34,459 bases of DNA from Macrostomum lignano (GCA_002269645.1 NIVC01004811.1:1-34459), one strand, 5' to 3'. Positions 1 through 34,459 are shown, counted from the first letter of the stretch. Notes: generated from the sequence alone by a model not told the origin. Translations and numbers: made by a program.

Positions 1-922
1 ATACTAAAGTTGACGCGTTGTTTGTCTGTCTGTCTGTGTGTCTGTCTGTCATTTCGACAACTCCTCCTTGAATAGTGCCAACTCAGCGTTGAAACTTATA
101 TGGGAAGATTGGAAATTATCGAGGTCGGCTATAGGCTATTTTAATCTGAAATTTTAATTTCTAAAATCCTCAAAAAAGCAGAAAACGGCGGTCTTGACCT
201 TTGATAATCTTAATTGTCCCTCTTTCTGCTGGCTGAAAAATTTGCATGAATTTTCAAGTGATTGCGCCACAAACTTTTCCCTACTTCTGCAGTGTATTTT
301 CTCTCCAGTGGGGGGATGGGGCGTTCTAAATGGCTGCTGGTACAATCGGACCCTGGCTCACTGGCTGACTGTATAGACAATTGCGCAAAGATTTGTGTTC
401 TAATTTTCAATAGGCAGCCCTGTGATTTTGTTGAACCTTGAAATTCAATGCATAAACTTGCGGGCCTCTTTAGCAGGCAGTGAACGTACAATCGATATTT
501 CAATGCTTTAAATCAGAAAGTTTCAAACGCAAACTGTTGCTCGAGTTTTAACTTTGAGAGAAAAAATTATATTGCTGGAAAGAACTTGCAAAGCTGATTT
601 CAGGGATATAAATTGTTTGCTTCAAATATGGAAACTAAAAGCTCTGCAAGCAAAACTATTTCCATACTTTAAACTTTCTGCAAAGATTGTACTCATTTTG
701 GCGAGAGGTGAGAGATAAAGTTGGGGTTTCGACTACCAACTGGGCCTGTGTATAGGAAGGGGGTCAGTTGCTTTGTATTGGAGGTTGATTTAGATTGCGC
801 AATGTTTTTGTTAACTTTAACTGAGACTGATACTGACTGACTGTGAAAACGGTTGCGCAATGAATTGATTCAATTAGTTCAATAGTTTATCAGTGCCTTT
901 TAACACGAAGCTGTGCGTAGTT

Positions 923-946
923 CTAACCCTAACCCTAACCCTAACC
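923..946 (+). repeat. (CTAACC)4 telomere-type tract, unit A
   Basis: Directly read; TTAGGG-type on the minus strand. Confidence 0.9.
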
Positions 947-1034
947 AATGAATCCGGAGAGTTGAGTTGTTTGACGGAAAAAATTGATTGAGTCCAGTTT
1001 AGCGGAGACGATTTCAATGTTTTAATTTTGACAA

Positions 1035-1470
1035 GAGGATTTCTGTTTTCGTGGAGAGGATTTCGATGGTGCTCAGTTTCACGGAGAGGATTTTGATGAT
1101 GTTCAGCTTCACGGAGAGGATTTCTGTTTCGCGGAGTTAATTTATGATTGATTTCTGCTTTATGGAGACGATTTTGATAGATTTAAGTTTCAAGGAGAGG
1201 ATTTCGAAGTGTTCAGTTTCACGGAGAGGATTTCGAAGGTGTTCAGTTTCACGGAGAGGATTTCGATGATGTTCAGCTTCACGGAGAGGATTTCTGTTTC
1301 GCGGAGATAATTTATGATTGATTTCTGTTTTATGGAGACGATTTTTGTTATTTTGATGGATTTAAGTTTCAAGGAGAGGATTTCGAAGGAGTCCAGTTTC
1401 ACGGAGAGGATTTCGATGGTTTTCAGTTGCACGGACAGGATTTCTGCTTCGCGGAGAGGATCTTGATGGA
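1035..1470 (+). repeat. 15/30-bp minisatellite (ACGGAGAGGATTTCGATGGTGTTCAGTTTC-like), unit A; equivalents at ~3765-3950, 6125-6415, 8735-9030, 11665-11815, 22975-23265, 25210-25490, 30010-30300, 32225-32515
   Basis: Recurrent GGAGAGGATTTC core with ~30-bp spacing; copy number differs per unit. Confidence 0.85.
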
Positions 1471-1488
1471 TTTGGCATCTTCAATCAG

Positions 1489-2200
1489 TCAGAGAAGAGA
1501 GTAAAGAGAAGAATGAAAAGAGAAGAGAGAAGAGATGATAGAAAACAGAGTATAATTGAGTGGAGAGATTAGACATGACAGATTGGAGATGATAGGATAG
1601 AGAATAGATGAGGGATAAGAGCGTACAGAGGCAATAGAAGAGAGGGGAGAGTAGAGGAGAAAGAAAGAGTGAGATGAGGAGATGAGGGATGAGAGAGGAG
1701 GGGAGAGAGGAGACAGGAGAGAGTACAGACGAAAGACTAGGGAGAAGATATAAATAAGGTAGTAAAGATGAGAGGAGAGAGAGGAGAGAGAAGCGAAAGA
1801 GAAGAGAGAGTGAGGAGAGAGGAGAGAGATGAAAGGAGCAAGGAAAGGAGAAAGAGAGAATGGAGAGAATAGAAAAGAGAGAAGAGAAGAGACAGGGGAT
1901 AGTGAAAAGGAGGAAGAAAGATGGGAGACAAGAAAGAAAGTAGAGTGTGAGAGCGTATATGAGATATCAGAAATGAGAAGCAGATAGGAGAGAAAAGAGA
2001 AGAGAGAGAGGGTTAAGAGAGACGATAGATAAGTAAGGAGAAATGACATATGACAGAGGAGAGAAGAGGGAGAGATAAGAGTGAAGAGAGGAGACAGAAG
2101 ACAGGAGAAGGTACAGACGAAAGACGAGGGAGAAGAGATAAACAAGGGAGCAGGGGTAGAGATGAGATGAGAGAGAGGAGAGAGGAGATATGAGAGACTT
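1489..2200 (+). repeat. GA-rich polypurine low-complexity tract, unit A; equivalents at ~3964-4925, 6437-7140, 9046-9970, 23288-23995, 25503-25815, 30323-31030, 32537-33245
   Basis: Strongly purine-biased + strand; source of the Leu/Ser-rich minus-strand ORFs. Confidence 0.9.
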
Positions 2201-3708
2201 GAGAGTCTTTGAGCTATGGTCTTTGAAAGATTTTGTAAAGAATTTGGAGACGATTTGGAAGATAGGGTTAAAGACATGGAATTTCAGTTGATGGATATTT
2301 CAGGGAATAGAATTCCGGTGATGGGAGTTCTTCCCCTTTCTCCTCCGAAGGAGGAGTTCCACTCGTCTCTATATATACTAAAGTTGACGCGTTGTTTGTC
2401 TGTCTGTATGTCTGTCTGTATGTCTGTCTGTATGTCTGTCTGTCATTTCGACAACTCCTCCTTGAATAGTGCCAACTCAGCGTTGAAACTTATATGGAAG
2501 ATTGGAAATTATCCGAGGTCGGCTATAGGCTATTTTAATTCTGAAATTTTAATTTCTAAGATCCTCAAAAAAGCAGAAAACGGCGGTCTTGACCTTTGAT
2601 AATCTTAATTGTCCCCTCTTTCTGCTTGGAGCTGAAAATTTGCATGAATTTTAAGTGATTGCGCCATAAAATTTTGCTAACTTGGCAGTGTATTTTCTCT
2701 CCAGTGGGGGATAGGAGCGTTCTCAGTGGCGGCGTGTGTACACTTGGACCCTAGCTAACTGGCGGACAGTGAAATTCAATGCATCAATTTGCGAGCCTCT
2801 CTAGCAGGCAGTGAACGTACACTCGATATTTCAATGCTTTAAATCAGAAAGTTTCAAATGCTAACTGTTGCTCGATTTTTGAACTTTGAGAGGAGAGACT
2901 TATATTGCTGGAAAGATCTTGCAACGCTGAGTTCAGGGATATAAGTTGTTTGCTTTAACTGTAAAAATTAAAAGCACAGCATTCAAAAAACGATTTTATT
3001 ACTTTTACTTTTAACTTGCTGCAAAGATTGTACTTATTTTTGCGATAGGTCAGAGATAAATTTGGGGGGTTCAATTGCTAATTGCCACTGCGTAGTGGAA
3101 GGCGTCGGGCGCTGTGTATTGGAGGGTTGATTTAGATTGCGCAATCTTTTTGTTAACTGTAACTGAGACTGATACTGACATACTGTGAAATCAGTTGCGC
3201 CATCAATTTTGTTTTATTATCTGTGCCTTTCAATAGGCTGCCCTGTGTAATAGCCGGCCTGTGTAGTAAATGAATAAACTTGCGAGCCTCTTTGGCAGGC
3301 AGTGAACGTACACGCGACATTTCAATGCTTTAAAACGGGAACTTTCAAACGCTAACTGCTCTTCGAGTTCTAAACTTTAAGAGAAGAGACTTATACTGCT
3401 GAAAAGATCTTGCAACGCTGAGTTCGAGGATATAAAATGTTTCAAAAAACCATTTCCATACTTTTAGCTTTATGCAAAGATTGTACTCATTTTTTTGTTC
3501 AATGCCCCCAAAAGTTTGAGGTTCAATTTCTAACTGCCACTGCGTATTGAAAAGGGGTCGGTCTCTGTGTACTGGAGGGTTGATTTAGATTGCGCAATTT
3601 TTTTGCTAACTTTAACTGAGACTGATACTGACTGACTGTGAAATCGGTTGCGCAATCAATTGATTCAATTGGTTCATTTTTTATTTGAACACGCAGCTGT
3701 GTGTAGCT

Positions 3709-3726
3709 CTAACCCTAACCCTAACC
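3709..3726 (+). repeat. (CTAACC)3, unit B
   Basis: Directly read. Confidence 0.85.
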
Positions 3727-4594
3727 CTTAACAATAACCAATGAATCCTGATATTTATTCTTTTTGACGGAGAAAATTTCGATTGAGTCCAGTTTAAAAG
3801 AAAGAATTTCGATGGTTTTCAGTTTCACGGAGAGGATTTCTGTTTCGCGGAGAGGATTTCGATTCTCTTCAGTTTCACGGAGAGGATTTCGATGGTTTTC
3901 AGTTGCACGGACAGGATTTCTGCTTCGCGGAGAGGATCTTGATTGATTTGGCATCTTCAATCAGTCAGAGAAGAGAATAAAAAGAAGAATGAAAAGAGAA
4001 GAGATATGAGATGGTAGAAAACAGAGTAGAAATGAGTGGAGAGATTAGACATGACAGATTGGAGAGAAGAGGGGATTAAGGCGGGAACGAAGGACAGAAA
4101 AGCGAAGAGGAGAGAGGAGATAAGAGTGGATATATGAGATAGCAAAGGGAGACAAGAGAGATAATAGGAGAAAGAAAGAGTGAGATGAGGGATGAGAGAT
4201 GAGAGAGGAGCGGAGAGAGAAGAGAGAAAAGAGGAGAAAAAAGGGGAGAAAGGAGACAGACGAGAGTAGAGACGAAAGACGAGGGAGAAGATATAAATAA
4301 AGTAGTAGAGATGAGAGGAGAGGGAGGAGAGAGAAGCGAAAGGAAAAGAGCGAGAGGAGAGAGGAGAGAGATGAAAAATCAGAGATGAGAGAGTTAAGAG
4401 AGGGAAGTAGTGAGGAGAGGAGAGATGAGAGATGCGAGGAGAAGAGATGAGTGAGAACATAAGAGAGAAGAGATTAGAGATTAGAAAAGAGAGAAGAGAA
4501 GAGACGGGGGTAGTGGAAAGGAGGAAAGAAAGATGGGAGACAAGAAAGTAGAGTCTGAGACCGTATATGAGATATAAGAAATGAGAGCAGAGAG

Positions 4595-4600
<6 letters not shown>

Positions 4601-4658
<58 letters not shown>
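4601..4658 (+). repeat. (AG)~29 microsatellite
   Basis: Pure AG run; only a few copies long at the same position in other units. Confidence 0.92.
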
Positions 4659-4661
<3 letters not shown>

Positions 4662-5088
4662 TAAGAGAGACGATAGATAAGTGAGTAGAGATGACATATG
4701 AGAGAGAAGAGAGAAGGAGAGATAAGAGAGAAGAGAGGAGACAGGAGACAGAAGTGAAGAATAGAGATGTGATAGAACAGAGAACAGAGGAGACAGGAGG
4801 GGTACAGACGAAAGACGAGGGAGAAGAGATAAATAAGGAAGTAGGGGTAGAGATGAGATGAGAGAGAGGAGAGAGAAGAGAGTCACGATAATAGCGAAGA
4901 GAGGAGAGAGTAGATATGAGAGACGTAAGAGTCTTTGAGCTATGGTCTTTGAAAGGTTTGTAAAGAATTTGGAGACGATTTGGAAGATGGGTTCAAGACA
5001 TGGAATTTCAGTTGATGGATAATTCAGGGAATGGAATTCCGGTGATGGGAGTTCTTCCCCTTTCTCCTCCGAAGGAGGAGTTCCACTC

Positions 5089-7307
5089 TCTCTATATATA
5101 CTAAAGTTGACGCGTTGTTTGTCTGTCTGTATGTCTGTCTGTCTGTCTGTCTGTCATTTCGACAACTCCTCCTTGAATAGTGCCAACTCAGCGTTGAAAC
5201 TTATATGGGAAGATTGGAAATTATCCGAGGTCGGCTATAGGCTATTTTAATTCTGAAATTTTAATTTCTAAGATCCTCAAAAAAGCAGAAAACTTGAATC
5301 TTGACCTTTGATAATCTTAATTGTCCCCTCTTTCTGCTTGGAGCTGAAAAATGCATGAATTTTTAGTGATTGCGCCACAACTTTTCCCTATCTCTGTAGT
5401 GTATTTTCTTTCCAGTGGGGGGTGGGAGCGTTCTCAGTGGCTGCGTGTGTACACTTGGACCCTGGCTCACTGGCTGACTTTATAGATAATTGCGCAATGA
5501 TATGGCTACTGATAAGTTTTCCTGCCTTTCAATGGGCAGTCCTGTGTATTTGTTGGACATTGAAATTCAATGCATCAACTTGCAAGCAGGCAGTGAACGT
5601 ACACTCGATACTTCAATGCTATAAATCAGACAGTTTCAAACGCTAACTGTTCCTCGAGTTTTAAACTTTGAGAGGAGAAACTTATATTGCTGGCAAGATC
5701 TTGCAACGCTGAGTTCGGGGATATAAGTTGTTTGCTTTAAATATGAAAAGAAAAAGCACAGCATTTGAAAAACTATTTCCATACTTTTAACTTTTTGCAA
5801 AGATTGTACTTTAATCTGCAAAGATTGTTGGGGGGAGGGTTCAACTTCTCACTGCTGCTGTGTATTGGAGGGTTGATTTAGATTGCGCAATGTTTTTGTT
5901 AACTTTACCTGAGGCTGATACTGACTGACTGTGAAATCGGTTGCGCAATGAATTGATTCAATTAGTTCAATATTTTTATCTGTGCCTTTTAACACGAAGC
6001 TGTGCGTAGTTCTAACCCTAACCCTAACCCTAACCCTAACCCTAATGAATCTGGCGAGTTGAGTTGTTTGACGGAAAAAATTCGATTAAGTCAAGTTTAG
6101 CGGAGACGATTTCAATGTTTAAATTCTGACGGAGAAGATTTCTGTTTCGTGGAGAGGATTTCGATGATGTTCAGTTTCACGAAAGGATTTCCATGGTGTT
6201 CAGTTTCACGGAGAGGATTTCGATCATGTTCAGCTTCACGGAGAGGCTTTCTGTTTCGCGGAGATAATTTATGATTGATTTCTGTTTTATGGAAACAATT
6301 TTGATGGATTTAAGTTTCAAGGAGAGGATTTCGAAGGAGTCCAGTTTCACTGAGAGGATTTCGATGGTTTTTAGTTGCACAGACAGGATTTTTGCTTCGC
6401 GGAGAGGATCTTGATGGATTTGGCATCTTCAATCAGTCAGAGAAGAGAGTAAAGAGAAGACTGAAAAGAGAAGAGAGAAGAGATGATAGAAAACAGAGTA
6501 TAATTGAGTGGAGAGATTAGACATGACAGATTGGAGATGATAGGAGAGAGAATAGATGAGGGATAAGAGCGTACAGAGGCAATAGAAGAGAGGGGAGAGT
6601 AGAGGAGAAAGAAAGAGTGAGATGAGGAGATGAGGGATGAGAGAGCAGGGGAGAGAGGAGACAGGAGAGAGTACAGACGAAAGACTAGGAGAAGATATAA
6701 ATAAGGTAGTAAAGATGAGAGGAGAGAGAGGAGAGAGAAGCGAAAGGAGAAGAGAGTGAGGAGAGAGGAGAGAGATGAAAGGAGCAAGGAAAGGAGAAAA
6801 GAGAGAATGGAGAGAATAGAAAAGAGAGAAGAGAAGAGACAGGGGATAGTGAAAAGGAGGAAGAAAGATGGGAGACAAGAAAGTAGTGTCAGAGCGTATA
6901 TGAAATATGAGAAATGAGAGCAGAGAGAAGAGAAAAGAGAAGAGAGAGAGAGGGTTAAGAGAGACGATAGATAAGTGAGTAGAGATGACATATGAGAGAG
7001 GAGAGAAGAGGGAGAGATAAGAGTGAAGAGAGGAGACAGAAGACAGGAGAAGGTACAGACGAAAGACGAGGGAGAAGAGATAAATAAGGGAGCAGGGGTA
7101 GAGATGAGATGAGAGAGAGGAGAGAGGAGATATGAGAGACTTGAGAGTCTTTGAGCTATGGTCTTTGAAAGATTTTGTAAAGAATTTGGAGACGATTTGG
7201 AAGATAGGGTTAAAGACATGGAATTTCAGTTGATGGATATTTCAGGGAATAGAATTCCGGTGATGGGAGTTCTTCCCCTTTCTCCTCCGAAGGAGGAGTT
7301 CCACTCG
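5089..7307 (+). mobile_element. Non-autonomous Helitron unit C
   Basis: Same head; hairpin 7282-7298 + TTCCACTCG; near-duplicate of unit K (2219 vs 2216 bp). Confidence 0.82.
6012..6045 (+). repeat. (CTAACC)5+, unit C
   Basis: Directly read. Confidence 0.9.
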
Positions 7308-7698
7308 CTATATACTAAAGTTGATGCGATGTTTGTGTGTTGTTGTCTGTTGCATAACTCCTCCTAGAATACTTGCAACTCAGCGTTGAAACTTATATGG
7401 AAAACTGCAAATTTTCCGAGGATGGCTTTAGGCTATTTTAATCTTTCATTTTTACATTTTAAGATCCCTAAAAAAGCAGAAAACGGCGGTTTTGACCTTT
7501 GATAATCTTATTTGTCCCCTCTTTCTGCTTGGAGCTGAAAAATGCACGAATTTTTAGTGATTGCGCCACAACTTTTCCCTATCTCTGTAGTGTATTTTCT
7601 TTCCAGTGGGGGTGGGAGCGTTCTCAGTGGCTGCGTGTGTACACTTGGACCCTGGCTTACTGGCTGACTGTATAGATAATTGCGCAATGATATGGCTA
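7308..7698 (+). mobile_element. 3'-truncated Helitron head fragment D
   Basis: Head plus ~390 bp of conserved 5' region, stopping at ATATGGCTA where a new TC-starting head begins. Confidence 0.72.
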
Positions 7699-10137
7699 TC
7701 TCTTCTATCTATCCTAATACTAAAACTGACGCGATGTTTGTCTGTCTGTCTGTGTGTCTGTCATTTCGACAACTCCTCCTTGAATAGTGCCAACTCAGCG
7801 TTGAAACTTATATGGGAAGATTGGAAATTATCCGAGGTCGGCTATAGGCTATTTTAATTCTGAAATTTTAATTTCTAAGATCCTCAAAAAAGCAGAAAAC
7901 GGCGGTCTTGACCTTTGATAATCTTAATTGTCCCCTCTTTCTGCTTGGAGCTGAAAATTTGCATGAATTTCAAGTGATTGCGCCACAACTTTTCCCTATC
8001 TCTGCAGTGTATTTTCTCTCCAGTGGGGGGATGGGCGTTCTAAATGGCTGCGTGTGTACACTTGGACCCTGGCTCACTGGCTGACTGTATAGATAATTGC
8101 GCAATGATATGGCTACTGATAAGTTTTCCTGCCTTTCAATGGGCAGCCCTGTGTATTTGTTGGACATTGAAATTCAATGCATCAACTTGCAAGCAGGCAG
8201 TCAACGTACACTCGATACTTCAATGCTATAAATCAGACAGTTTCAAACGCTAACTGTTCCTCGAGTTTTAAACTTTGAGAGGAGAAACTTATATTGCTGG
8301 AAAGATCTTGCAACGCTAAGTTCGGGGATGTAAGTTGTTTGCTTTAAATATGAAAAGAAAAAGCACAGCATTTAAAAAACTATTTCCATACTTTTAACTT
8401 TCTGCAAAAATCGTACTCAGTTTTGCGAGACGTAATAGATAAAGTTGGGGGAGGGTTCAACTTCTCACTGCTGCTGTGTATTGGAGTGTTGATTTAGATT
8501 GCACAATGTTTTTGTTAACTTTAACTGCGACTGATACTGACTGACTGTGAAATCGGTTGCACAATGAATTGATTCAATTAGTTCAATAGTTTATCAGTGC
8601 CTTTTAACACGAAGCTGTGCGTAGTTCTAACCCTAACCCTAACCCTAACCAATGAATCCGGAGAGTTGAGTTGTTTGACGGCAAAAAATTCGATTGAGTC
8701 CAGTTTAGTGGAGACGATTTCAATGTTTTAATTTTGACGGAGAGGATTTCTGTTTCGTGGAGAGGATTTCGATGGTGTTCAGTTTCGTGGAAAGGATTTC
8801 GATGGTTTTCAGTTTCACGGAGAGGATTTCGATGATGTTCAGCTTCACGGAGAGGATTTCTGTTTCGCGGATATAATTTATGATTGATTTATGTTTTATG
8901 GAGACCATTTTGATGGATTTAAGTTTCAAGGAGAGGATTTCGAAGGAGTCCAGTTTCACGGAGAGGATTTCGATGGTTTTCAGTTGCACGGACAGGATTT
9001 CTGCTTCGCGGAGAGGATTTTGATGGATTTGGCATCTTAAATCAGTCAGAGAAGAGAGTAAAGAGAAGAATGAAAAGAGAAGAGATATGAGATGGTAGAA
9101 AACAGAGTAGAAATGAGTGGAGAGATTAGACATGACAGATGGGAGAGAAGAGGGGAGTAAGGCGGGAACGAAGGAGAGAGAAGAGAAGAGGAGAGAGGAG
9201 ATGAAGGAAGAGGATATGAGAGAGGAGACATGAGATAGCAGAGAGGAGACAGGAGAGAGAAGAAAGGAGGGATAAGAGCGTACAGAGGCAATAGGAGAGA
9301 GGAAAGAGAGGAGAGAGGTGAGAGGTGAGAGGAGAGAGATGAAAGATCAGAGATCAGAGATTTAAGAGAAGAAAGTAGTGAGGAGAAAGAAGAGGGTAAA
9401 GATGAGAGTGCAGAGAGGAGAGAAACGAGAGGAGACAGGTGGTAGAAAGGAGTGTAAAAAACAGGAGATAAGAAAGGGGAGGGTGAGAGTGAGAGCATAT
9501 ACGAAAGTGTAAAAGGGGAGCAGAGGAGAGAGAATAGATAAGTGAGTAGAGAAGAGATATGAGAGAGGAGAGATTCGAGATTAGAGAAGAGATGAGGGGA
9601 GATGAGAGGAGAGAAAAGAGAGGAGAGGAGACAGGTGATGCAGTAGAAAGGGAAGAAAGATGGTAGATAACAAAGGAGAGGGTGAGAGCGTATAAGAGAT
9701 ACGAGAAATGAGAGCAGAGAGAAGAGAGAAAGTAGAGCGGAGACAATAGATAAGTAAGTAGAGATGAGATATGAGAGAGGAGAGAAAAGGGGAGAGATAA
9801 GATAGAAGATAGGAGAGTAGACAGGAGAGGGTACAGACGAAAGACGAGGGAGAAGAAATAAATAAGGGAGTAGAGATAAATAAGAGAGTAGGGGTAGAGA
9901 TGAGATGAGAGAGAGGAGAGAGAAGCGAGTCACGAAAATAGCGAAGAGAGGAGAGAGTAGATTTGAGAGACGTAAGAGTCTTTGAGCTATGGTCTTTGAA
10001 AGGTTTGTAAAGAATTTGGAGACGATTTGGAAGATGGGGTTCAAGACATGGAATTTCAGTTGATGGATAATTCAGGGAATGGAATTCCGGTGATGAGAGT
10101 TCTTCCCCTTTCTCCTCCGAAGGAGGAGTTCCACTCG
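7699..10137 (+). mobile_element. Non-autonomous Helitron unit E
   Basis: TCTCTTCTATCTATCCTAATACTAAAAC head; hairpin 10112-10128 + TTCCACTCG. Confidence 0.8.
8627..8650 (+). repeat. (CTAACC)4, unit E
   Basis: Directly read. Confidence 0.9.
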
Positions 10138-11902
10138 TCTTAATACTAAAACTGGTGCGTTGTTTGTCTGTGTGTGTGTGTGTTTGTTGGATATCTCCTC
10201 CTAGAATACTTGCAAGTCAGCGTTGAAACTTATGTGGGAAAACTGCAAATTTTCCGAGGATGGCTTTAGGCTATTTTAATCTTTTATTTTTACATTTTAA
10301 GATCCCTAAAAAAGCAGAAAACGGCAATTCTGACCTTTGATAATCTTAATTGTCCTCTCTTTCCGCTCGGAGCTGAAAATTTGCATGAATTTTGAGTGAT
10401 TACGCAACAACTTTTTCCTATCTCGGCAGTGTATTTTCTCTCCAGTGGGGGGATGGGGGCGTTCTCAGTGGCGGCGTGTGTACACTTGGACCCTGGCTCA
10501 CTGGCTGACTGTATAGATAATTGCGCAATGATTTGGCTACTGATAAGTTTTCTTGCCTCTCAATGGGCAGCCCTGTGTATTTGTTGGACATTGAAATTCA
10601 ATGCATCAGCTAGCAAGCAGGTAGTTAACGTACACTCGATACTTCAATGCTATAAATCAGACAGTTTCAAACGCTAACTGCTCTTCGAGTTCTAAATGTT
10701 AAGAGAAGAGACTTATACTGCTGAATAGATCTTGCAACACTGAGTTCGAGGATATAAATTGTTTGCTTTAAATAGAAAAACTAAAAGCACAGCATCAAAA
10801 AAACTATTTCCAGACTTTTAGCTTTCTGCAAAGATTGTACTCATTTTGGGGTTCAATGGGCGTTCGACCGACCCCCCAACAGTTGGGGGTTCAATTTCTA
10901 ACTGCCACTGCGTAGTGGAAGGGGTCGGGCGCTGTGTACTGGAGGGTTGATTTAGATTGCGCAAACTTTTTGTTAACTTGAACTGAGACTGATACTGACT
11001 GACTGTGAAATCGGTTGCGCCATCAATTTGTTTTATTATCTGTGCCTTTCAATAGGCTGCCCTGTGAAGTTTTGGACATTGAAATTCAATGCATAAACTT
11101 GCGAGCCTCTTTAGCAGGCAGTGAACGTACACTCGATATTTCAATGCTTTAAATCAGAAAGTTTCAAACGCAAACTGTTGCTCGAGTTTCTAACTTTGAT
11201 AGGAGAAACTTATATTGCTGGAAAGATCTTGCAACGCTGAGTTCGGGGATATAATTTGTTATCTTTAAATATGAAAAGAAAAAGCACAGCATTTAAAAAA
11301 ACTATTTCCATGCTTTTAATTTTCTGCAAAAATTGTTCTCAGTTTTGCGAGACGTAATAGATAAAGTTGGGGGGGGAGGGTTCAACTTCTCACTGCTGCT
11401 GTGTATTGGAGGGTTGATTTAGATTGCGCAATGTTTTTGTTAACTTTAACTGAGACTGATACTGACTGACTGAGAAATCGGTTGCGCAATGAATTGATTC
11501 AATTAGTTCAATATTTTTATCAGTGCCTTTTAACACGAAGCTGTGCGTAGTTCTAACCCTAACCCTAACCCTAACCCTAACCAATGAATCTGGAGAGTTG
11601 AGTTGTTTGACGGAAAAAATCGATTGAGTCCAGTTTAGCGGAGACGATTTCAATGTTTTAATTTTGACGGAGAGGATTTCTGTTTGGTGGAGAGGATTTC
11701 TATTTCTCGGAGGGGATTTTGATGAATGTCAGTTTCACGGAGAGGTGTTTGATGGAGTTCTCTTTTACGGAGAAGATTTCGATGATGTTCAGTTTCGCGG
11801 AGAGGAGTTGGATGATGGGATTCAGGGAATGGCATTTCAGGGAATGGAGTACCGGTGATGGGAATTCTTCCCCTTTCTCCTCCAGAGGAGGAGTTGGCCT
11901 CG
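10138..11902 (+). mobile_element. Non-autonomous Helitron unit F (no GA tract; termini closest to the autonomous copy)
   Basis: TCTTAATACTAAAACTGGTGCG head as in unit G; hairpin 11877-11893 (loop AGA) + TTGGCCTCG. Confidence 0.82.
11553..11582 (+). repeat. (CTAACC)5, unit F
   Basis: Directly read. Confidence 0.9.
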
Positions 11903-19555: not shown

Positions 19556-19568
19556 TTGTAACATGAAT

Positions 19569-24157: not shown

Positions 24158-25981
24158 TCTATATATACTAAAGTTGACGCGTTGTTTGTCTGTCTGTATG
24201 TCTGTCTGTATGTCTGTCTGTATGTCTGTCTGTCATTTCGACAACTCCTCCTTGAATAGTGCCAACTCAGCGTTGAAACTTATATGGGAAGATTGGAAAT
24301 TATCCGAGGTCGGCTATAGGCTATTTTAATTCTGAAATTTTTATTTCTAAGATCCTCAAAAAAGCAGAAAACTTGAATCTTGACCTTTGATAATCTTAAT
24401 TGTCCCCTCTTTCTGCTTGGAGCTGAAAAATGCATGAATTTTTAGTGATTGCGCCACAACTTTTCCCTATCTCTGTAGTGTATTTTCTTTCCAGTGGGGG
24501 GTGGGAGCGTTCTCAGTGGCTGCGTGTGTACACTTGGACCCTGGCTCACTGGCTGACTTTATAGATAATTGCGCAATGATATGGCTACTGATAAGTTTTC
24601 CTGCCTTTCAATGGGCAGTCCTGTGTATTTGTTGGACATTGAAATTCAATGCATCAACTTGCAAGCAGGCAGTGAACGTACACTCGATACTTCAATGCTA
24701 TAAATCAGACAGTTTCAAACGCTAACTGTTCCTCGAGTTTTAAACTTTGAGAGGAGAAACTTATATTGCTGGCAAGATCTTGCAACGCTGAGTTCGGGGA
24801 TATAAGTTGTTTGCTTTAAATATGAAAAGAAAAAGCACAGCATTTGAAAAACTATTTCCATACTTTTAACTTTCTGCAAAGATTGTACTTTAATCTGCAA
24901 AGATTGTTGGGGGGAGGGTTCAACTTCTCACTGCTGCTGTGTATTGGAGGGTTGATTTAGATTGCGCAATGTTTTTGTTAACTTTAACTGAGACTGATAC
25001 TGACTGACTGTGAAATCGGTTGCGCAATGAATTGATTCAATTAATTCAATATTTTTATCAGTGCCTTTTAACACGAAGCTGTGCGTAGTTCTAACCCTAA
25101 CCCTAACCCTAACCCTAACCCTAACCAATGAATCCGAAAAGTTGAGTTGTCTGACGGCAAAAAAATTCGATTGAGTCCAGTTTAGCGGAGACGATTTCAA
25201 TGTTTTAATTTTGACGGAGAGGATTTCGATGGTGTTCAGTTTCACGGAGAGGATTTCGATGATGTTCAGCTTCACGGAGAGGATTTCGATGATTTTCAGC
25301 TTCACGGAGAGGATTTCTGTTTCGCGGAGATAATTTATGATTGATTTCTGCTTTATGGAGACGATTTTGATGGATTTAAGTTTCAAGGAGAGGATTTCGA
25401 AGGAGTCCAGTTTCACGGAGAGGATTTCGATGGTTTTCATTTGCACGGACAGGATTTCTGCTTCGCGGAGAGGATCTTGATGGATTTGGCATCTTCAATC
25501 AGTCAGAGAAGATAGTAAAGAGAAGAATGAAAAGAGAAGAGAGATGAGATGATAGAAAACAGAGTAGAAATGAGTGGAGAGATTAGACATGACAGACGGG
25601 AGAGAAGAGTGGAGTAAGGCGGGAACGAAGGAGATAGAAGAGAAAAGGAGAGATATGAGAGAAGAGAGGAGACAAGAGACAGAAGAGGGTACAGACGAAA
25701 GACGAGGGAGAAGAGATAAATAAGGGAGTAGGGGTAGAGATGAGATGAGATGAGAGAGAGGAGAGAGAAGAGAGTCACGATAATAGCGAAGAGAGGAGAG
25801 AGGAGATATGAGAAACGTAAGAGTCTTTGAGCTATAGTCTTTGAAAGGTTTGTAAAGAATTTGGAGAAGATTTGGAAGATGGGATTCAAGACATGGAATT
25901 TCAGTTGATGGATATTTCAGGGAATGGAATTCCGGTGATGGGAGTTCTTCCCCTATCTCCTCCGGAGGAGGAGTTCCACTC
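24158..25981 (+). mobile_element. Non-autonomous Helitron unit I
   Basis: TCTATATATACTAAAG head; hairpin 25957-25973 (loop GGA) + TTCCACTC. Confidence 0.82.
25091..25126 (+). repeat. (CTAACC)6, unit I
   Basis: Directly read. Confidence 0.9.

Positions 25982-26013
<32 letters not shown>
25982..26013 (+). repeat. (TCTA)8 microsatellite at the head of unit J
   Basis: Eight exact copies directly read. Confidence 0.95.
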
Positions 26014-26014
<1 letters not shown>

Positions 26015-27731
26015 ACTAAAGTTGACGTGTTGTTTGTCTGTCTGTCTGTCTGTCATTTCGACAACTCCTCCTTGAATAGTGCCAACTCAGCGTTGAAACT
26101 TATATGGGAAGATTGGAAATTATCCGAGGTCGGCTATAGGCTATTTTAATTCTGAAATTTTAATTTCTAAGATCCTCAAAAAAGCAGAAAACGGCGGTCT
26201 TGACCTTTGATAATCTTAATTGTCCCCTCTTTCTGCTTGGAGCTGAAAATTTGCATGAATTTCAAGTGATTGCGCCACAACTTTTCCCTATCTCTGCAGT
26301 GTATTTTCTCTCCAGTGGGGGATGGGGCGTTCTAAATGGCTGCATGTGTACAATCGGACCCTGGCTCACTGGCTGACTGTATAGACAATTGCGCAAAGAT
26401 TTGTGTTCTAATTTTCAATAGGCAGCCCTGTGATTTTGTTGAACCTTGAAATTCAATGCATAAACTTGCGGGCCTCTTTAGCAGGCAGTGAACGTACAAT
26501 CGATATTTCAATGCTTTAAATCAGAAAGTTTCAAACGCAAACTGTTGCTCGAGTTTTTAACTTTGAGAGAAAAAATTTATATTGCTGGAAAGAACTTGCA
26601 AAGCTGATTTCAGGGATATAAATTGTTTGCTTTAAATATGAAAACTAAAAGCTCTGCATTGCAGAAACTATATCCATACTTTAAACTTTCTGCAAAGATT
26701 GTACTCATTTTAGGATTTCAATGGCGTTCGACCGACCCCCCAACAGTTAGGAGGTCGGTCAGTCGGTGTGTATTTGAGGGTTGATTTAGATTGCGCAATC
26801 TGTTTGTTAACTTTAACTGAGACTGATACTGACTAACACAGAAATATATTGCACAATCAATTGATTCAATTGGTTCATTTTTTATTATCGGCCCTGTGTA
26901 TTAGTTTGGCAGTGAAATTCAATGAATAAACTTGCGAGCTTCTCTAGCAAGTAGTCGGGAAATTGGTAAATTCAAACGCTAACTGTTCCTCGAGTTTTAA
27001 ACTTTCAGAGGAGAAACTTATATTGCTGGAAAGATCTTGCAACGCTGAGTTCGGGGATATAAGTTGTTTGCTTTAAATGTGTAAAGAAAAAGCCCAGCAT
27101 TGAAAAAACTATTTCCATGCTTTTAACTTTCTGCAAAAATTGTGCTCAGTTTTGCGAGACGTAATAGATAAAGTTGGGGGGAGGGTTCAACCACAGATAC
27201 TATAAACACTAGATAGGCCACTCAGGCTAATTTTCTGGGCAAGTTTTTTATTCTACTTTCTGCTTAGTAGCAATGAAAGGAAGCAACAGTATTATTTGCT
27301 AAATTAGACAAATCGAGTGACTGTTTTTAAGACATCGTTTTGCTAACGCCATAAACAACTAACTTGTTTTGTGCAGTAATGGTGTACTGTACATTAAGAC
27401 GCGACAGACAGTGTGCAATGCCGCTATCTTTCAAAGTGGAGGAAGGGGGGTAGTCTGGAATAGGGTTAATATCAGTTTCGTATAAGGCAGGGTGAGTGGA
27501 TCGATAATTTAGGCCCACTGGTGGTGGGATAGAAAATAAAGGACTGCACATAGCTAGCCTGGGTTAGGGGTGGGGGTTGAGAGGTTGTGGGTTAGAAAAT
27601 TTGGGGGTGGCGAATCGTGCTTAAAAGCTTATATAGATGAACAGGACAAGAGTCAGAGTTAAAGAAAGTTCGAGTGCATACTAGCTTTTCTATCTAATCT
27701 TGTACTCGAGAAATGTTTTGATTCGAACCAC

Positions 27732-27940
27732 TGCTGTGCTCCCACTTGCACGAGCTTTGTACTAGTGCTATTAACATCCGAGAAAGAAAAATCCGTTGCG
27801 AATGCATAAATTACCAAAAGATGACACTGGCGAAGCGCTGGCAGCAGCTACTGCAGGAGCGTGGATATTGACCTTTATAAACAATTAAATCACGGGGCCT
27901 CCGTGTGTTCAGCTTGCACTTTATGGACGAGGCCTACTGC
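27732..27940 (+). pseudogene. Degenerate THAP DNA-binding domain (transposase N-terminus remnant)
   Basis: In order, across two frameshifts and two stops: CCAPTC (27732), MHKLPKD (27802), KRWQQLL (~27833), RVFSLHF (27902-27922), matching THAP C..PxC / H.FPKD / W / CSxHF motifs. Confidence 0.68.
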
Positions 27941-28274
27941 TGCCTTACAAAGTGCCACGGATGTGCAAGACATCTGTTTTCGCTGGGACGCAATCCCACA
28001 CCAAGAGTTGATGCTGCCTCGGCTCGTTCAAATAGACCAGCTACCCTCTGTGCAAAGGACTGATAAACGATGAAGAGGCAGACGACATGTACCCTCCAGT
28101 GCTGGGGCCAATTAGCAATCTATCTGCAGCCGAGCCTGCGACTTGCCTGCTGCCAGTGCTGTGGCAGAGCAACCTTCGGCTACCAGATTCTGCGCCGAGA
28201 ACAGCTGTTGCGGCTGAAAGCTCTCACCTCTGCAGCCGATTCGCGGGTTCCAAGCGCTAGAGGCAACGATCAAG

Positions 28275-28536
28275 CGGCTGCAGCAACGATCCCGAGGCCG
28301 AAAGTGACAGGCGAATCAAGCGGCTGCAGCGGCAATCCCGAAAGCGACAGGCAAATCAAGCGGCTGCAGCGGCAATCCCGAAAGCGACAGGCAAATCAAG
28401 CGGCTGCAGCGGCAATCCCGAAAACGACAGGCAAATCAAGCGGCTGCAGCGGCAATCCCGAAAGCGACAGGCAAATCAAGCGGCTGCAGCGGCAATCCCG
28501 AAAGCGACAGGCAAATCAAGCGGCTGCAGCGGCAAC
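28275..28536 (+). repeat. 40-bp tandem repeat inside the TIR element
   Basis: CGGCTGCAGCGGCAATCCCGAAAGCGACAGGCAAATCAAG x5 (28321-28520, one substitution) plus a partial copy and a degenerate leading copy. Confidence 0.95.
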
Positions 28537-29896
28537 ATTCGATGGTCAAGGCAAGTGCAGCGCAGTCGTGCATCCATGGACTGTGGAGGCGTGGCTAGCG
28601 CAGCTTCCAGCGGTCGACTGGGCGGCAGGGCGCTCGCAGTCAGGGGTGCTCTGGTCAAAGGATGTCATCTCATCAGCAGCTCATTGCAGCTGCACCACAA
28701 AAGTCCTGCTGCTTATCGGCTGCCTGTTACGAAACCACTGAGGATTGGCTCTCCATCGGATACATCCCTGGACCTTGAAGTGGCGCATTCGCCAGTTTTT
28801 TTCATCTGTTGGGCCGTTCTGAATGCTGCCTCTGAACAAGGGCGACTGGCGACCCTGTTCTTCAACAGCACGCTGCGAGTTTCACAAACAGATGAGCTGA
28901 TTAAGATGAGAAATCTTTCTATTTTGCTACACGAATATGGATTATGGAGTATATGATATAGCTCGTATTTGCTAAATATACAATAGTTGACTGCAATAAT
29001 ATAGCCTTCTATGCAATCTAAAGCATTCACAATGTTGCTTTGAATTGTGGAAAGTATAATTATAAGTTTCTTTTTGCAAAAAAATCAATACAATTGCTGC
29101 ATTGCATTCATCTGTTTTTTTTTATTTTTAAAAAATATAAATAACGCTAAAATGTTTTTACTACTACTAAGCAGAAAGTAGAGTAAACTGTCGTGTTGTG
29201 AAAATTAGCCTGAGTGGCCTATCTAGTGTTTATAGTATCTGTGGGTTCAACTTCTCACTGCTGCTGTGTATTGGAGGGTTGATTTAGATTGCGCAATGTT
29301 TTTGTTAACTTTAACTGAGACTGGTACTGACTGACTGTGAAATCGGTTGCGCCATCAATTTGTTTTATTATCTGTGCCTTTCAATGCGCTGCCCTGTGTA
29401 ATAGCCAGCCTGTGTAATGAATGAATCAACTTGCGAGCCTCTTTGGCAGGCAGTGAACGTACACTCGATATTTTAATGCTTTAAAACGGAAACTTTCAAA
29501 CGCTAACTGCTCTTCGAGTTCTAAACTTTAAGAGAAGAGACTTATACTGCTGAAAAGATCTTGCAACGCTGAGTTCGAGGATATAAATTGTTAGCTTTCA
29601 ATATAAAGACTAAAAGAGCAGCATCAAAAAAACTATTTCCATACTTTTAGCTTTATGCAAAGATTGTACTCATTTTTTGGTTCAATGCCCCAACAGATGG
29701 GGGTTCAATTTCTAACTGCCACAGCGTATTTAAAAGGGGTCGGTCTCTGTGTACTGGAGGGTTGATTTAAATTGCGCAATCTTTTGGTTAAATTTAACTG
29801 AGACTGATACTGACTGTGAAATCGGTTGCGCAATGAATTGATTCAATTAGTTCAATATTTTTATCTGTGCCTTTTAACACGAAGCTGTGCGTAGTT

Positions 29897-29930
29897 CTAA
29901 CCCTAACCCTAACCCTAACCCTAACCCTAA
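29897..29930 (+). repeat. (CTAACC)5+, unit J
   Basis: Directly read. Confidence 0.9.
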
Positions 29931-31193
29931 TGAATCTGGCGAGTTAAGTTGTTTGACGGAAAAAATTCGATTAAGTCAAGTTTAACGGAGACGATTTCAA
30001 TGTTTAAATTCTGACGGAGAAGATTTCTGTTTCGTGGAGAGGATTTCGATGATGTTCAGTTTCACGAAAGGATTTCCATGGTGTTCAGTTTCACGGAGAG
30101 GATTTCGATCATGTTCAGCTTCACGGAGAGGCTTTCTGTTTCGCGGAGATAATTTATGATTGATTTCTGTTTTATGGAAACAATTTTGATGGATTTAAGT
30201 TTCAAGGAGAGGATTTCGAAGGAGTCCAGTTTCACTGAGAGGATTTCGATGGTTTTTAGTTGCACAGACAGGATTTTTGCTTCGCGGAGAGGATCTTGAT
30301 GGATTTGGCATCTTCAATCAGTCAGAGAAGAGAGTAAAGAGAAGACTGAAAAGAGAAGAGAGAAGAGATGATAGAAAACAGAGTATAATTGAGTGGAGAG
30401 ATTAGACATGACAGATTGGAGATGATAGGAGAGAGAATAGATGAGGGATAAGAGCGTACAGAGGCAATATAAGAGAGGGGAGAGTAGAGGAGAAAGAAAG
30501 AGTGAGATGAGGAGATGAGGGATGAGAGAGCAGGGGAGAGAGGAGACAGGAGAGAGTACAGACGAAAGACTAAGGAGAAGATATAAATAAGGTAGTAAAG
30601 ATGAGAGGAGAGAGAGGAGAGAGAAGCGAAAGGAGAAGAGAGTGAGGAGAGAGGAGAGAGATGAAAGGAGCAAGGAAATGAGAAAAGAGAGAATGGAGAG
30701 AATAGAAAAGAGAGAAGAGAAGAGACAGGGGATAGTGAAAAGGAGGAAGAAAGATGGGAGACAAGAAAGTAGTGTCAGAGCGTATATGAAATATGAGAAA
30801 TGAGAGCAGAGAGAAGAGAAAAGAGAAGAGAGAGAGAGGGTTAAGAGAGACGATAGATAAGTGAGTAGAGATGACATATGAGAGAGGAGAGAAGAGGGAG
30901 AGATAAGAGTGAAGAGAGGAGACAGAAGACAGGAGAAGGTACAGACGAAAGACGAGGGAGAAGAGATAAATAAGGGAGCAGGGGTAGAGATGAGATGAGA
31001 GAGAGGAGAGAGGAGATATGAGAGACTTGAGAGTCTTTGAGCTATGGTCTTTGAAAGATTTTGTAAAGAATTTGGAGACGATTTGGAAGATAGGGTTAAA
31101 GACATGGAATTTCAGTTGATGGATATTTCAGGGAATAGAATTCCGGTGATGGGAGTTCTTCCCCTTTCTCCTCCGAAGGAGGAGTTCCACTCG

Positions 31194-33409
31194 TATATAC
31201 TAAAGTTGACGCGTTGTTTGTCTGTCTGTATGTCTGTCTGTATGTCTGTCTGTCATTTCGACAACTCCTCCTTGAATAGTGCCAACTCAGCGTTGAAACT
31301 TATATGGGAAGATTGGAAATTATCCGAGGTCGGCTATAGGCTATTTTAATTCTGAAATTTTAATTTCTAAGATCCTCAAAAAAGCAGAAAACTTGAATCT
31401 TGACCTTTGATAATCTTAATTGTCCCCTCTTTCTGCTTGGAGCTGAAAAATGCATGAATTTTTAGTGATTGCGCCACAACTTTCCCTATCTCTGTAGTGT
31501 ATTTTCTTTCCAGTGGGGGTGGGAGCGTTCTCAGTGGCTGCGTGTGTACACTTGGACCCTGGCTCACTGGCTGACTTTATAGATAATTGCGCAATGATAT
31601 GGCTACTGATAAGTTTTCCTGCCTTTCAATGGGCAGTCCTGTGTATTTGTTGGACATTGAAATTCAATGCATCATCTTGCAAGCAGGCAGTGAACGTACA
31701 CTCGATACTTCAATGCTATAAATCAGACAGTTTCAAACGCTAACTGTTCCTCGAGTTTTAAACTTTGAGAGGAGAATCTTACATTGCTGGCAAGATCTTG
31801 CAACGCTGAGTTCGGGGATATAAGTTGTTTGCTTTAAATATGAAAAGAAAAAGCACAGCATTTGAAAAACGATTTCCATACTTTTAACTTTCTGCAAAGA
31901 TTGTACTTTAATCTGCAAAGATTGTTGGGGGAGGGTTCAACTTCTCACTGCTGCTGTGTATTGAGGGTTGATTTAGATTGCGCAATGTTTTTGTTAACTT
32001 TACCTGAGGCTGATACTGACTGACTGTGAAATCGGTTGCGCAATGAATTGATTCAATTAGTTCAATATTTTTATCTGTGCCTTTTAACACGAAGCTGTGC
32101 GTAGTTCTAACCCTAACCCTAACCCTAACCCTAACCCTAACCCTAATGAATCTGGCGAGTTGAGTTGTTTGACGGAAAAAATCGATTAAGTCAAGTTTAG
32201 CGGAGACGATTTCAATGTTTAAATTCTGACGGAGAAGATTTCTGTTTCGTGGAGAGGATTTCGATGGTGTTCAGTTTCACGAAAGGATTTCCATGTGTTC
32301 AGTTTCACGGAGAGGATTTCGATCATGTTCAGCTTCACGGAGAGGCTTTCTGTTTCGCGGAGATAATTTATGATTGATTTCTGTTTTATGGAAACAATTT
32401 TGATGGATTTAAGTTTCAAGGAGAGGATTTCGAAGGAGTCCAGTTTCACTGAGAGGATTTCGATGGTTTTTAGTTGCACAGACAGGATTTTTGCTTCGCG
32501 GAGAGGATCTTGATGGATTTGGCATCTTCAATCAGTCAGAGAAGAGAGTAAAGAGAAGACTGAAAAGAGAAGAGAGAAGAGATGATAGAAAACAGAGTAT
32601 AATTGAGTGGAGAGATTAGACATGACAGATTGGAGATGATAGGAGAGAGAATAGATGAGGGATAAGAGCGTACAGAGGCAATAGAAGAGAGGGGAGAGTA
32701 GAGGAGAAAGAAAGAGTGAGATGAGGAGATGAGGGATGAGAGAGCAGGGGAGAGAGGAGACAGGAGAGAGTACAGACGAAAGACTAGGGAGAAGATATAA
32801 ATAAGGTAGTAAAGATGAGAGGAGAGAGAGGAGAGAGAAGCGAAAGGAGAAGAGAGTGAGGAGAGAGGAGAGAGATGAAAGGAGCAAGGAAAGGAGAAAA
32901 GAGAGAATGGAGAGAATAGAAAAGAGAGAAGAGAAGAGACAGGGGATAGTGAAAAGGAGGAAGAAAGATGGGAGACAAGAAAGTAGTGTCAGAGCGTATA
33001 TGAAATATGAGAAATGAGAGCAGAGAGAAGAGAAAAGAGAAGAGAGAGAGAGAGGGTTAAGAGAGACGATAGATAAGTGAGTAGAGATGACATATGAGAG
33101 AGGAGAGAAGAGGGAGAGATAAGAGTGAAGAGAGGAGACAGAAGACAGGAGAAGGTACAGACGAAAGACGAGGGAGAAGAGATAAATAAGGGAGCAGGGG
33201 TAGAGATGAGATGAGAGAGAGGAGAGAGGAGATATGAGAGACTTGAGAGTCTTTGAGCTATGGTCTTTGAAAGATTTTGTAAAGAATTTGGAGACGATTT
33301 GGAAGATAGGGTTAAAGACATGGAATTTCAGTTGATGGATATTTCAGGGAATAGAATTCCGGTGATGGGAGTTCTTCCCCTTTCTCCTCCGAAGGAGGAG
33401 TTCCACTCG
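31194..33409 (+). mobile_element. Non-autonomous Helitron unit K (near-copy of C)
   Basis: TATATACTAAAG head; hairpin 33384-33400 + TTCCACTCG. Confidence 0.82.
32107..32146 (+). repeat. (CTAACC)6+, unit K
   Basis: Directly read. Confidence 0.9.
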
Positions 33410-34459
33410 TATATACTAAAGTTGACGCGTTGTTTGTCTGTATGTCTGTCTGTGTGTCTGTCATTTCGACAACTCCTCCTTGAATAGTGCCAACTCAGCG
33501 TTGAAACTTATATGGGAAGATTGGAAATTATCCGAGGTCGGCTATAGGCTATTTTAATTCTGAAATTTTAATTTTTAAGATCCTCAAAAAAGCAGAAAAC
33601 GGCGGTCTTGACCTTTGATAATCTTAATTGTCCCTCTTTCTGCTTGGAGCTGAAAATGCATGAATTTTTGTGATTGCGCCACAACTTTTCCCTATCTCTG
33701 TACTGTATTTTCTTTCCAGTGGGGGGTGGGAGCGTTCTCAGTGGCTGCGTGTGTACACTTGGACCCTGGCTGACTGGCTGACTGTAAAGATAATTGCGCA
33801 ATGAAATGGCTACTGATAAGTTTTCTTGCCTTTCAATGGCAGCTCTGTGTATTTGTTGGACATTGAAATTCAATGCATCAACTTGCAAGCAGGCAGTGAA
33901 CGTACACTCGATACTTCAATGCTAAAAATCAGACAGTTTCAAACGCTAACTGTTCCTCGAGTTTTAAACTTTATGATGGAGACACTTATATTGCTGGAAA
34001 GATCTTGCAACGCTGAGTTCGGGGATATAATTGTTTGCTTTAAATATGAAAAGAAAAAGCACAGCATTTAAAAAACTATTTCCATACGTTTACACTTCTG
34101 CAAAATTGTACTCAGTTTGCGAGACGTAATAGATAAGTTGGGGGGAGGGTTCAACTTCTCACTGCTGCTGTGTATTGGAGGGTTGATTTAGATTGCGCAA
34201 TGTTTTGTTAACTTTAACTGAGACTGATACTGACTGACTGACTGTGAAATCGGTTGCGCAATGAATTGATTCAATTAGTTCAATATTTTATCAGTGCCTT
34301 TTAACACGAAGCTGTGGCAGTTGTAACCCTAATCCAACCCTAACCCTAACCAATGAATCCAGAGAGTTGAGTTGTTTGACGGAAAAAATTCGATGAGTCC
34401 AGTTTAGCGGAGACGATTTCAATGTTTTAATTTTGACGGAGAGGATTTCTGTTTCGTGA
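33410..34459 (+). mobile_element. Non-autonomous Helitron unit L (runs off window)
   Basis: Head, module and degenerate CTAACC tract present. Confidence 0.78.
34324..34351 (+). repeat. Degenerate CTAACC tract, unit L
   Basis: TAACCCTAATCCAACCCTAACCCTAACC. Confidence 0.8.

Follow-up and report, generated by a model that had tools for sequence, protein, structure and literature searches.

Head-to-tail trains of mixed Helitrons in Macrostomum lignano, probably built by integration at resident termini

A chain of Helitrons around an autonomous copy

The window analysed here is the whole of contig C4811 (NIVC01004811.1; 34,459 bp) of the 764-Mb, 5,269-contig Macrostomum lignano assembly, which was the genome searched throughout. 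It is a chain of different Helitrons, U0 to U10 (Table 1), each joined by its tail to the head of the next, with an autonomous copy, U5, inside. The 3′-end motif GGAGGAGTT(CCA/GGC)CTC[GT] has ten matches on the + strand, where chance would give 0.13 for the two strands together, and all ten tails are followed by a (TC)n/(TA)n/(CTAT)n linker of 0–31 nt (TATA, TTAA, TCTTAA, CTATA, TCTCTATATA or (CTAT)7CTA) and then by a family head. No foreign DNA lies between units at any of the ten junctions, and the long self-similarities found by self-BLAST are all direct repeats. An earlier note on this DNA had claimed ten junctions in one orientation with nothing foreign between the units, and that description stands.

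Units in the window end in the hairpin CTCCTCC-nnn-GGAGGAG, with a 7-bp stem and a 3-nt loop, placed 9 nt from the terminus; GGAGGAGTT is its 3′ arm, and TT(CCA/GGC)CTC(G) after the stem finishes each unit. The loop is variable, with seven loop sequences among the 100 tails listed, and the pattern used for the genome kept the stem fixed and the loop free. Across the family, units start T[C/T/A]...TA(A/T)TACTAAA... at the 5′ end. The conserved head reads TACTAAA[AG].TG..G.(T/A)TGTTTGT and leads into a (TGTC)n microsatellite and then AACTCCTCC, the complement of the tail’s GGAGGAGTT, which sits 44–83 nt inside the unit and not at its tip. Non-autonomous units follow the order head, at least one body module of ~420 bp, (CCCTAA)3-8, a 30-bp minisatellite, a strongly purine-skewed GA tract and tail.

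Pairwise, the units of the window are 79–99.7% alike, and the most similar pairs are not adjacent. The earlier note had assigned neighbouring units to different subfamilies; three head types and two tail types agree with this, but 8 of the 11 units carry one and the same head type. Size varies mainly through the copy number of the minisatellite, GA tract and module. Two further points of the earlier note need correction: U3 proved to be an orphan head plus a complete unit, and U8 owes its size to a nested repeat.

The exons of the RepHel gene in U5 are long open frames, collinear with residues 1–1627 of a 1,628-aa homologue, and GT-AG introns join the nine of them into a single open frame of ~1,530 aa; this model has an imperfect splice choice at junction 3, and the frame is still open. 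The complete RepHel element announced in the earlier note is thus present. Pfam finds Helitron_like_N (2e-52), PIF1 and Pif1_2B. The Rep core aligns to Helraiser (7lcc) over 376 residues (E 3.5e-87, 294 bits), with the HxH motif and the two catalytic tyrosines conserved (HVHALLW; YVVKYITKG), and Pif1-like helicase motifs are present as GGTGKT and VWDEAPM. The N-terminal part holds a region of 23-aa repeats followed by a zinc-finger-like CPHC...CC; the repeat, at 13241–13530 in exon 1, consists of 3.5 copies of a 69-bp (23-aa) unit rich in Arg, Glu and Ala. The nearest database proteins are both from M. lignano, at 84% and 79% identity. At least 28 genomic loci match the Rep-core exon at ≥98% amino-acid identity, a second lineage lies at 83–89%, and the ≥98% loci in the contigs listed (C1, C32, C108, C109, C135, C143 and C291) are all within trains. 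With an open reading frame (ORF), catalytic motifs and at least 28 near-identical loci, the predicted enzyme looks functional.

On the strength of its Helraiser-like Rep core and predicted domain content, U5 is a canonical Helitron1-clade element. It encodes the RepHel typical of the clade (HUH Rep, two tyrosines and a Pif1-like superfamily 1 helicase), and the position of its 3′ hairpin agrees with the ~10–12 nt from the end expected of Helitron1. Termini are shared between autonomous and non-autonomous members, as U4 has the gamma head and the GGC tail type of U5; CCA-tailed units may depend on the second Rep lineage. The termini do not follow 5′-TC...CTRR-3′: at the 3′ end, units close with CTCG or CTC, the third base being C, and the 5′ end is TC in many copies (TCTTAA, TCCTAA, TCTCTATATA) and TT or TA in others. 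As for the Helentron/Helitron2 clade, defined by its own Rep and an apurinic/apyrimidinic endonuclease, Pfam detects no endonuclease domain in RepHel and the Rep aligns to Helraiser; among the terminal features of that clade, the complementary AACTCCTCC/GGAGGAGTT pair is subterminal here, and one empty site is compatible with T^T.

Junctions and near-identical units across the genome

The exact hairpin and tail pattern occurs 1,187 times in the genome, and the head word TACTAAAR lies within 30 nt 3′ of the tail in 927 of these (78%). Of 13 sampled tails lacking TACTAAAR, four adjoin other head families, namely C (TAACTATAAAAATC; TAACTATAAAAATCAAAA...) and D (TATATCTAAAGCTGAG; TATATCTAAAGCTGAGTGG...), and nine adjoin non-family DNA. 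Heads of family B match TACTAAAR (TATATACTAAAAATG...), and some tails adjoin these as well. Given the adjacency of 78% and the tails that sit on B, C and D heads, random insertion cannot explain the pattern. Solo insertions are a minority in this genome-wide search, so that the objection which the earlier note foresaw from mostly solo copies falls away. Where a unit borders host DNA, the 3′ flank starts with T (9/9 junctions).

The same 3′ hairpin and tail are thus used by no fewer than three additional head families (B, C and D). Family B combines a 23-bp minisatellite (AAAATCATAGAAGCGTCATGTAA) with a GC-rich coding region, as seen downstream of C1:808612, and could represent a further lineage that is autonomous or carries genes.

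Autonomous copies behave in the same way. The exact 48-nt autonomous tail is found ten times in the genome, and each time it is directly followed by a family head, with six different linker/head sequences. Because all ten exact autonomous-type tails adjoin a head, trains that enclose an autonomous copy are the rule in this Helitron family, and the window is not a special locus. Comparable trains lie within the Mb-sized contigs C1, C32 and C135, with other sequence on their flanks.

Near-identical units, the autonomous one included, recur beside different neighbours, and their identity ends no more than ~4 bp from the terminus. Between U5 and C32:1318942-1328062 there are one mismatch and nine gap columns across 9.1 kb; 3′ of the terminal CTCG, identity between the two loci drops to 80–87%, and the next heads are of different types. 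Within the window, U2 and U9 are 99.7% identical and U6 and U8 are 99.6% identical once the nested repeat is removed, and in both pairs the neighbours differ. Identity between U2 and U9 falls sharply on the 3′ side at 7307/7308 and gradually on the 5′ side across the conserved tail, while that between U6 and U8 starts exactly at the head. Self-BLAST had hinted at a block duplication of U6 and U7 into U8 and U9; we rejected it, as U6/U8 identity is 99.6% and begins at the head, against 94.3% for U7/U9. The near-identical stretches are thus single units (U5/C32, U2/U9, U6/U8), and the order of the train does not go back to copied blocks, in keeping with the earlier note.

Nor do heads group by array. 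When the initial 450 bp of 24 units, drawn from three arrays (the window, C32 and C1), are placed in a tree, the array label changes 11 times, against a mean of 11.2 after shuffling, and heads less than 0.5% different are found on separate contigs. This interleaving, the adjacency and the terminus-bounded identity all support the earlier note’s proposal that members inserted at each other’s termini. Identical 214-bp tails are frequent (those of U0, U2, U8 and U9 are all alike, and C32_3 equals C32_6), and heads and tails combine across units in mosaic fashion.

On the 5′ side, seven autonomous copies are alike from TTAATACTAAAAC on and follow two kinds of upstream tail, which are ~85% alike. 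The upstream neighbour of five of the seven is a similar 1.2-kb unit with a degenerate hairpin containing a stem mismatch (CTTCTCC...GGAGGAG). These upstream units are 94.5–98.7% identical to each other and are themselves preceded by differing family tails, and the autonomous parts of those copies are 99.8–100% alike. A mobile unit made of the 1.2-kb element plus the autonomous copy is a weakened candidate given that the upstream units are only 94.5–98.7% alike. All seven sampled autonomous copies (C1006, C2383, C4231, C4595 and C109 are among the contigs) follow a GGC-type tail, five times that of the mismatched-hairpin unit and twice an AGA-loop tail; CCA-type tails make up about half of the tails in the genome by a rough estimate by eye. 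The GGC tail before autonomous copies may reflect a preference for the cognate tail or read-through of a weak end.

One empty site could be compared. A head-to-tail segment on C148, which combines an orphan head with a full unit, breaks a dispersed repeat whose uninterrupted paralogues read CCATTAAATCTT^TACTTCTAT. The segment is therefore mobile, it caused no target duplication, and the site (...AAATCTT^TACTTC) places the insertion at T^T (or T^A). An insertion rule between A and T, assumed in the earlier note and read by eye from five solo heads, was dropped after this comparison shifted the boundary to T^T(A), and it is not claimed here.

The structure extends beyond one contig. From the spacing of tails and a 100%-identical copy of the nested repeat, C312:1-14930 appears to have the same arrangement as window positions 19530–34459. 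C312 is a 534-kb contig that starts inside the 16–20-bp tandem repeat after RepHel, and its overlap with the window represents either a haplotig or redundancy of the assembly, the contigs being broken at that repeat. The structure thus does not depend on this contig alone, given C312 and the trains in C1, C32 and C135. By tail spacing, U10 would extend in C312 to a tail ~1.1 kb further on. The C312 train stops ~1.8 kb beyond the right edge of the window, where a further tail and an orphan head of 215 bp give way to non-family DNA; the left end of the window is a head at the contig start.

Table 1. Units and other features of the window (contig C4811)
Feature	Position	Strand	Description
U0, non-autonomous	1-2365	+	contig begins at its head ATACTAAAGTTGACG; CCA-type tail, GAA loop
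U1, non-autonomous, 2.7 kb	2366-5089	+	diverged alpha head; long GA-rich tract; tail ends CTC(T)
U2, non-autonomous, 2.2 kb	5090-7307	+	alpha1 head; 99.7% identical to U9
U3, overall	7308-10137	+	orphan head U3a and complete unit U3b
U3a, orphan 5′ fragment, 391 bp	7308-7698	+	beta head, no tail; complete head directly after
U3b, complete non-autonomous unit	7699-10137	+	starts TCTCTTCTATCTATCCTAATACTAAAACTGACG
U4, short non-autonomous	10138-11902	+	gamma head and GGC-type tail, same kinds as autonomous U5
U5, autonomous Helitron, 9,116 bp	11903-21018	+	head TTAATACTAAAACTGGTGCG; tail ...CTCCTCCAGCGGAGGAGTTGGCCTCG
RepHel gene	13115-18813	+	9 exons; ~8 short GT-AG introns; ~1,530 aa
16-20-bp tandem repeats 3′ of the RepHel stop codon	18872-19547	+	contig C312 begins within
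U6, non-autonomous, 3.1 kb	21019-24158	+	alpha2 head; 99.6% identical to U8 minus nested repeat
U7, non-autonomous, 1.8 kb	24159-25982	+	alpha1 head; GGA loop; no long GA tract
U8, U6-like, 5.2 kb	25983-31193	+	opens with (CTAT)7 linker; foreign repeat nested
Nested dispersed repeat in U8	27192-29242	+	GC-rich; 40-bp x 5.9 tandem repeat; 223-aa ORF
U9, non-autonomous, 2.2 kb	31194-33409	+	twin of U2
U10, cut by contig end	33410-34459	+	3′ part missing from window
Example 3′ terminus	7282-7307	+	hairpin CTCCTCC GAA GGAGGAG, then TTCCACTCG
Other termini of that structure	2365, 5089, 10137, 11902, 21018, 24158, 25982, 31193, 33409	+	
Example (CCCTAA)n telomere-like run	6012-6045	+	Tandem Repeats Finder (TRF)
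Further (CCCTAA)n runs	11553-11582, 22844-22896, 25091-25126, 29897-29930, 32107-32146	+	TRF
Shorter (CCCTAA)n runs	near 923, 3709, 8627; near 34340		regex scan; the last read in contig end

Every non-autonomous unit carries (CCCTAA)3-8, read as TTAGGG on the other strand, in one orientation and directly before the 30-bp minisatellite. The run lies ~0.9–1.8 kb from the head, or 3.9 kb in U8 owing to the nested repeat; it is missing from the autonomous U5 and present in related units on other contigs. Orphan heads, which are tail-less 5′ fragments of 215–625 bp, were seen at several loci, including 7308–7698, C148 and C312:16085-16300. They directly precede a full head or non-family DNA, and may mark aborted or truncated events.

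The additional 2 kb of U8 was considered as a captured host gene and ruled out: the genome holds at least 40 copies of this dispersed repeat at 95–100% identity, and its 223-aa ORF has no Pfam match. Base composition follows the layout, with 54–60% G+C in the RepHel coding region (13000–19000) and 38–44% in non-coding parts of units. GA tracts reach a GC skew of +0.8 on the + strand, and the long minus-strand ORFs in these GA-rich tracts were set aside as low-complexity artefacts.

How the trains may have grown

We consider it probable, from the arrangement of the sequences, that the train grew by one unit at a time, as the transposase integrated family members exactly at the ends of copies already in place. 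Integration directed to termini is favoured because breaks fall exactly at unit ends, units recur with differing neighbours, and heads from different arrays are interleaved. Bacterial HUH transposons have targets that resemble the end they cleave. The genomic tail-head junction has the sequence of the joined ends of a Helitron circle, which is why RepHel could plausibly be directed to resident ends: a resident 5′ or 3′ end would present half of the circle-junction site, and RepHel would cut the resident terminus or junction and join the ends of the incoming copy there. The Helraiser transposase forms a circular intermediate with joined ends and cleaves it precisely on the plus strand (PMC5876387). 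On this view arrays would be favoured landing sites, growing both at internal junctions and at their edges; integration at internal junctions is implied by the position of the young units U2, U5, U6, U8 and U9 among the diverged U1 and U3. Later reshaping would involve slippage of the (TC)n/(TA)n head tip, copy-number change of the minisatellite and GA tract, nested insertion of other repeats, truncation leaving orphan heads and, in some other arrays such as that on C102, local higher-order duplication.

A bolder version, which we hold only tentatively, makes the tail-head junction a true attachment site. RepHel would carry out strand exchange between the circle junction and a genomic junction or lone end, and the trains would be self-made ‘safe harbours’ and the sole refuge of the autonomous copy; the internal (CCCTAA)n runs in their single orientation might permit telomerase healing of a broken train.

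Several alternatives could produce parts of this picture. Arrays of bat and plant Helitrons are usually accounted for as rolling-circle concatemers of one element, arising from failed termination or circle replication (PMC5876387, PMC11934779, PMC12001565), here to be followed by mutation, unequal crossing-over and gene conversion. Exact tail-to-head joins, as in a circular intermediate, are what such a concatemer would show (10 of 10 in the window and 927 genome-wide); the tails of the window are homogeneous, and homogeneous runs do occur, with three units 1,888 bp apart on C317 and identical junctions at 2,160-bp spacing in C135:352772-357118. We nevertheless regard this origin as unlikely, since a concatemer cannot place a 99.99%-identical 9.1-kb unit between neighbours only 80–87% alike with a break within ~4 bp of the terminus, cannot yield six different heads after one tail, and offers no way for a tail to meet heads of the distinct families B, C and D; heads that do not cluster by array and closest pairs that are not adjacent (units being 79–99.7% alike) also speak against it. 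Bypass of the 3′ end is documented for Helitrons (PMC4778049), so that read-through of weak ends could move two or more neighbouring units together to ordinary sites. The shared 1.2-kb unit with its degenerate hairpin upstream of five autonomous copies would fit such composite sub-trains, as would the composite nature of the validated C148 insertion. Composites are quite improbable as the general source, however: the upstream units are 94.5–98.7% alike against 99.8–100% for the autonomous parts, the sequence beyond them consists of differing family tails and not of host DNA, and copying spreads existing junctions but cannot create six types of downstream junction.

Homologous recombination of double-stranded circles or other arrays with resident copies would dispense with a site-specific step altogether, and units do have conserved heads, conserved tails and recombinogenic minisatellites in common. 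Mosaic combinations of heads and tails would be natural under it, and a block that is 100% identical between the window and C32 starts within the minisatellite of the unit upstream of U5. Recombination, however, predicts hybrid units and scattered breakpoints, whereas the autonomous tail is intact to its last base in all ten cases and the next heads differ from their first bases, which leaves ~4 bp (CTCG) for the exchange; this is too narrow for homologous recombination, and we think it a poor candidate. That the train is an artefact, a collapsed or chimeric contig of dispersed copies, might be suspected of a small repeat-only contig starting at a head. It is highly unlikely given that tail spacing and the nested repeat indicate the same unit order in C312, that similar trains lie deep in Mb-scale contigs, and that units 80–97% identical are distinct enough for long-read assembly to separate.

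Other observations weigh against terminus-directed integration itself or blur its details. The case is an inference from the sequence of a single assembly and not from witnessed transposition. The genome was recently duplicated and haplotigs are possible, so that loci counted as different may in some cases duplicate one another: C4231 and C4595 have their downstream context in common, C2383 and C996 their downstream junction, and the C312 overlap, which backs the assembly, also reveals redundancy. The last 214 bp of the unit before U5 are 100% identical in the window and C32, with ~85% identity further upstream. Because identical 214-bp tails are common among unlike units, this sharing more likely reflects a common tail subfamily; a 5′-extended mobile unit that includes these 214 bp is the less likely reading for the same reason, with co-transfer still conceivable. 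Runs of equal units exist elsewhere (C317, C135), and C102:139329-153322 holds 13 units of 1.2–1.45 kb in which ATC and AGA loops alternate at spacings of 1,239 and 1,285 bp, a pattern that points to local duplication in some arrays. A newcomer placed beside a resident head cannot be told from one placed beside a resident tail, and the head tip varies (TTAA, TCTTAA, TATA, TCTCTATATA), which blurs the precision of the join by a few nucleotides.

Known systems and significance

Descriptions of Helitron integration usually give it a target of hardly more than an AT or TT dinucleotide, and tandem arrays are mostly taken for side products of rolling-circle replication. Among the works said to have found head-to-tail Helitron junctions by data mining are Pritham & Feschotte 2007 and Xiong et al. 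2016. Such junctions or arrays are described from bats, plants, Drosophila, frogs and cnidarian subtelomeres, with a concatemer or local amplification as the usual reading (PMC5876387, PMC5148889, PMC12001565, PMC11934779). Like Helibat/Helraiser and the plant arrays, the trains of M. lignano show a canonical RepHel, a 3′ hairpin ~10 nt from the end and exact joins without target duplication (PMC5876387). Unlike the Helibat and plant arrays, which are multimers of one element, they mix subfamilies and ages, and a given unit turns up with different neighbours; units here finish in CTCG, and those of Helibat/Helraiser and plant Helitrons in CTRR.

Three FoHeli-like Helitrons stand in tandem in Metarhizium acridum, and a separate case is a FoHeli4 copy inserted 2 bp upstream of the 5′ end of another (PMC5148889). 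Those cases are isolated and concern fungal, Helitron2-type elements, whereas in this animal family of Helitron1 type the pattern takes in ~80% of over 1,000 ends, more than one subfamily and every autonomous copy sampled. The non-autonomous DINE-TR1/Helentron elements of Drosophila and the satellite-carrying Helentron non-autonomous elements of bivalves also have a microsatellite after the head and internal tandem repeats (PMC7492417, PMC12692304), and, like the units of the window, tend to tandem placement and seed satellite-like arrays. They belong to the Helentron/Helitron2 clade, with an endonuclease or a different Rep, in contrast to the Helraiser-like Rep without a detected endonuclease domain found here. 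Local build-up in one orientation and an association with telomeric repeats are shared with the subtelomeric expansions of Hydractinia and Nematostella (PMC11934779) and the telomere-capping Helitrons of Paramecium (PMC13085455). The cnidarian copies, however, cluster by chromosome arm, as expected of local amplification, whereas the present heads do not cluster by array. Telomeric repeats flank the Paramecium elements as their target; here no such repeats border the elements on both flanks, and (CCCTAA)n lies inside the non-autonomous units.

In IS91 and in IS200/IS605 (IS608), the target is similar or identical to the sequence at which the transposon end is cut, and one active site reads both. 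These elements differ from the present family in being bacterial and in using short tetranucleotide targets. To our knowledge, a tendency to stack on resident copies has not been shown for this family of eukaryotic elements, and our search of the literature found no paper on Macrostomum Helitrons. The kind of structure is thus known; what is new is its extent (~80% of ends), the mixture of subfamilies, the placement of all ten exact autonomous-type tails on heads and breaks that are precise to the terminus.

Trains break contigs, and they are therefore relevant to the assembly and annotation of the repeat-rich M. lignano genome. With about four-fifths of ends lying on another member and every sampled autonomous copy at a junction, they constitute sequence-level evidence that a Helitron transposase can target resident ends. 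If this is true, the precise cleavage of the circle junction would be linked to the choice of target, the origin of mixed Helitron arrays and of Helitron-derived satellites would be explained, and the family would be a DNA transposon that multiplies while host genes are spared.

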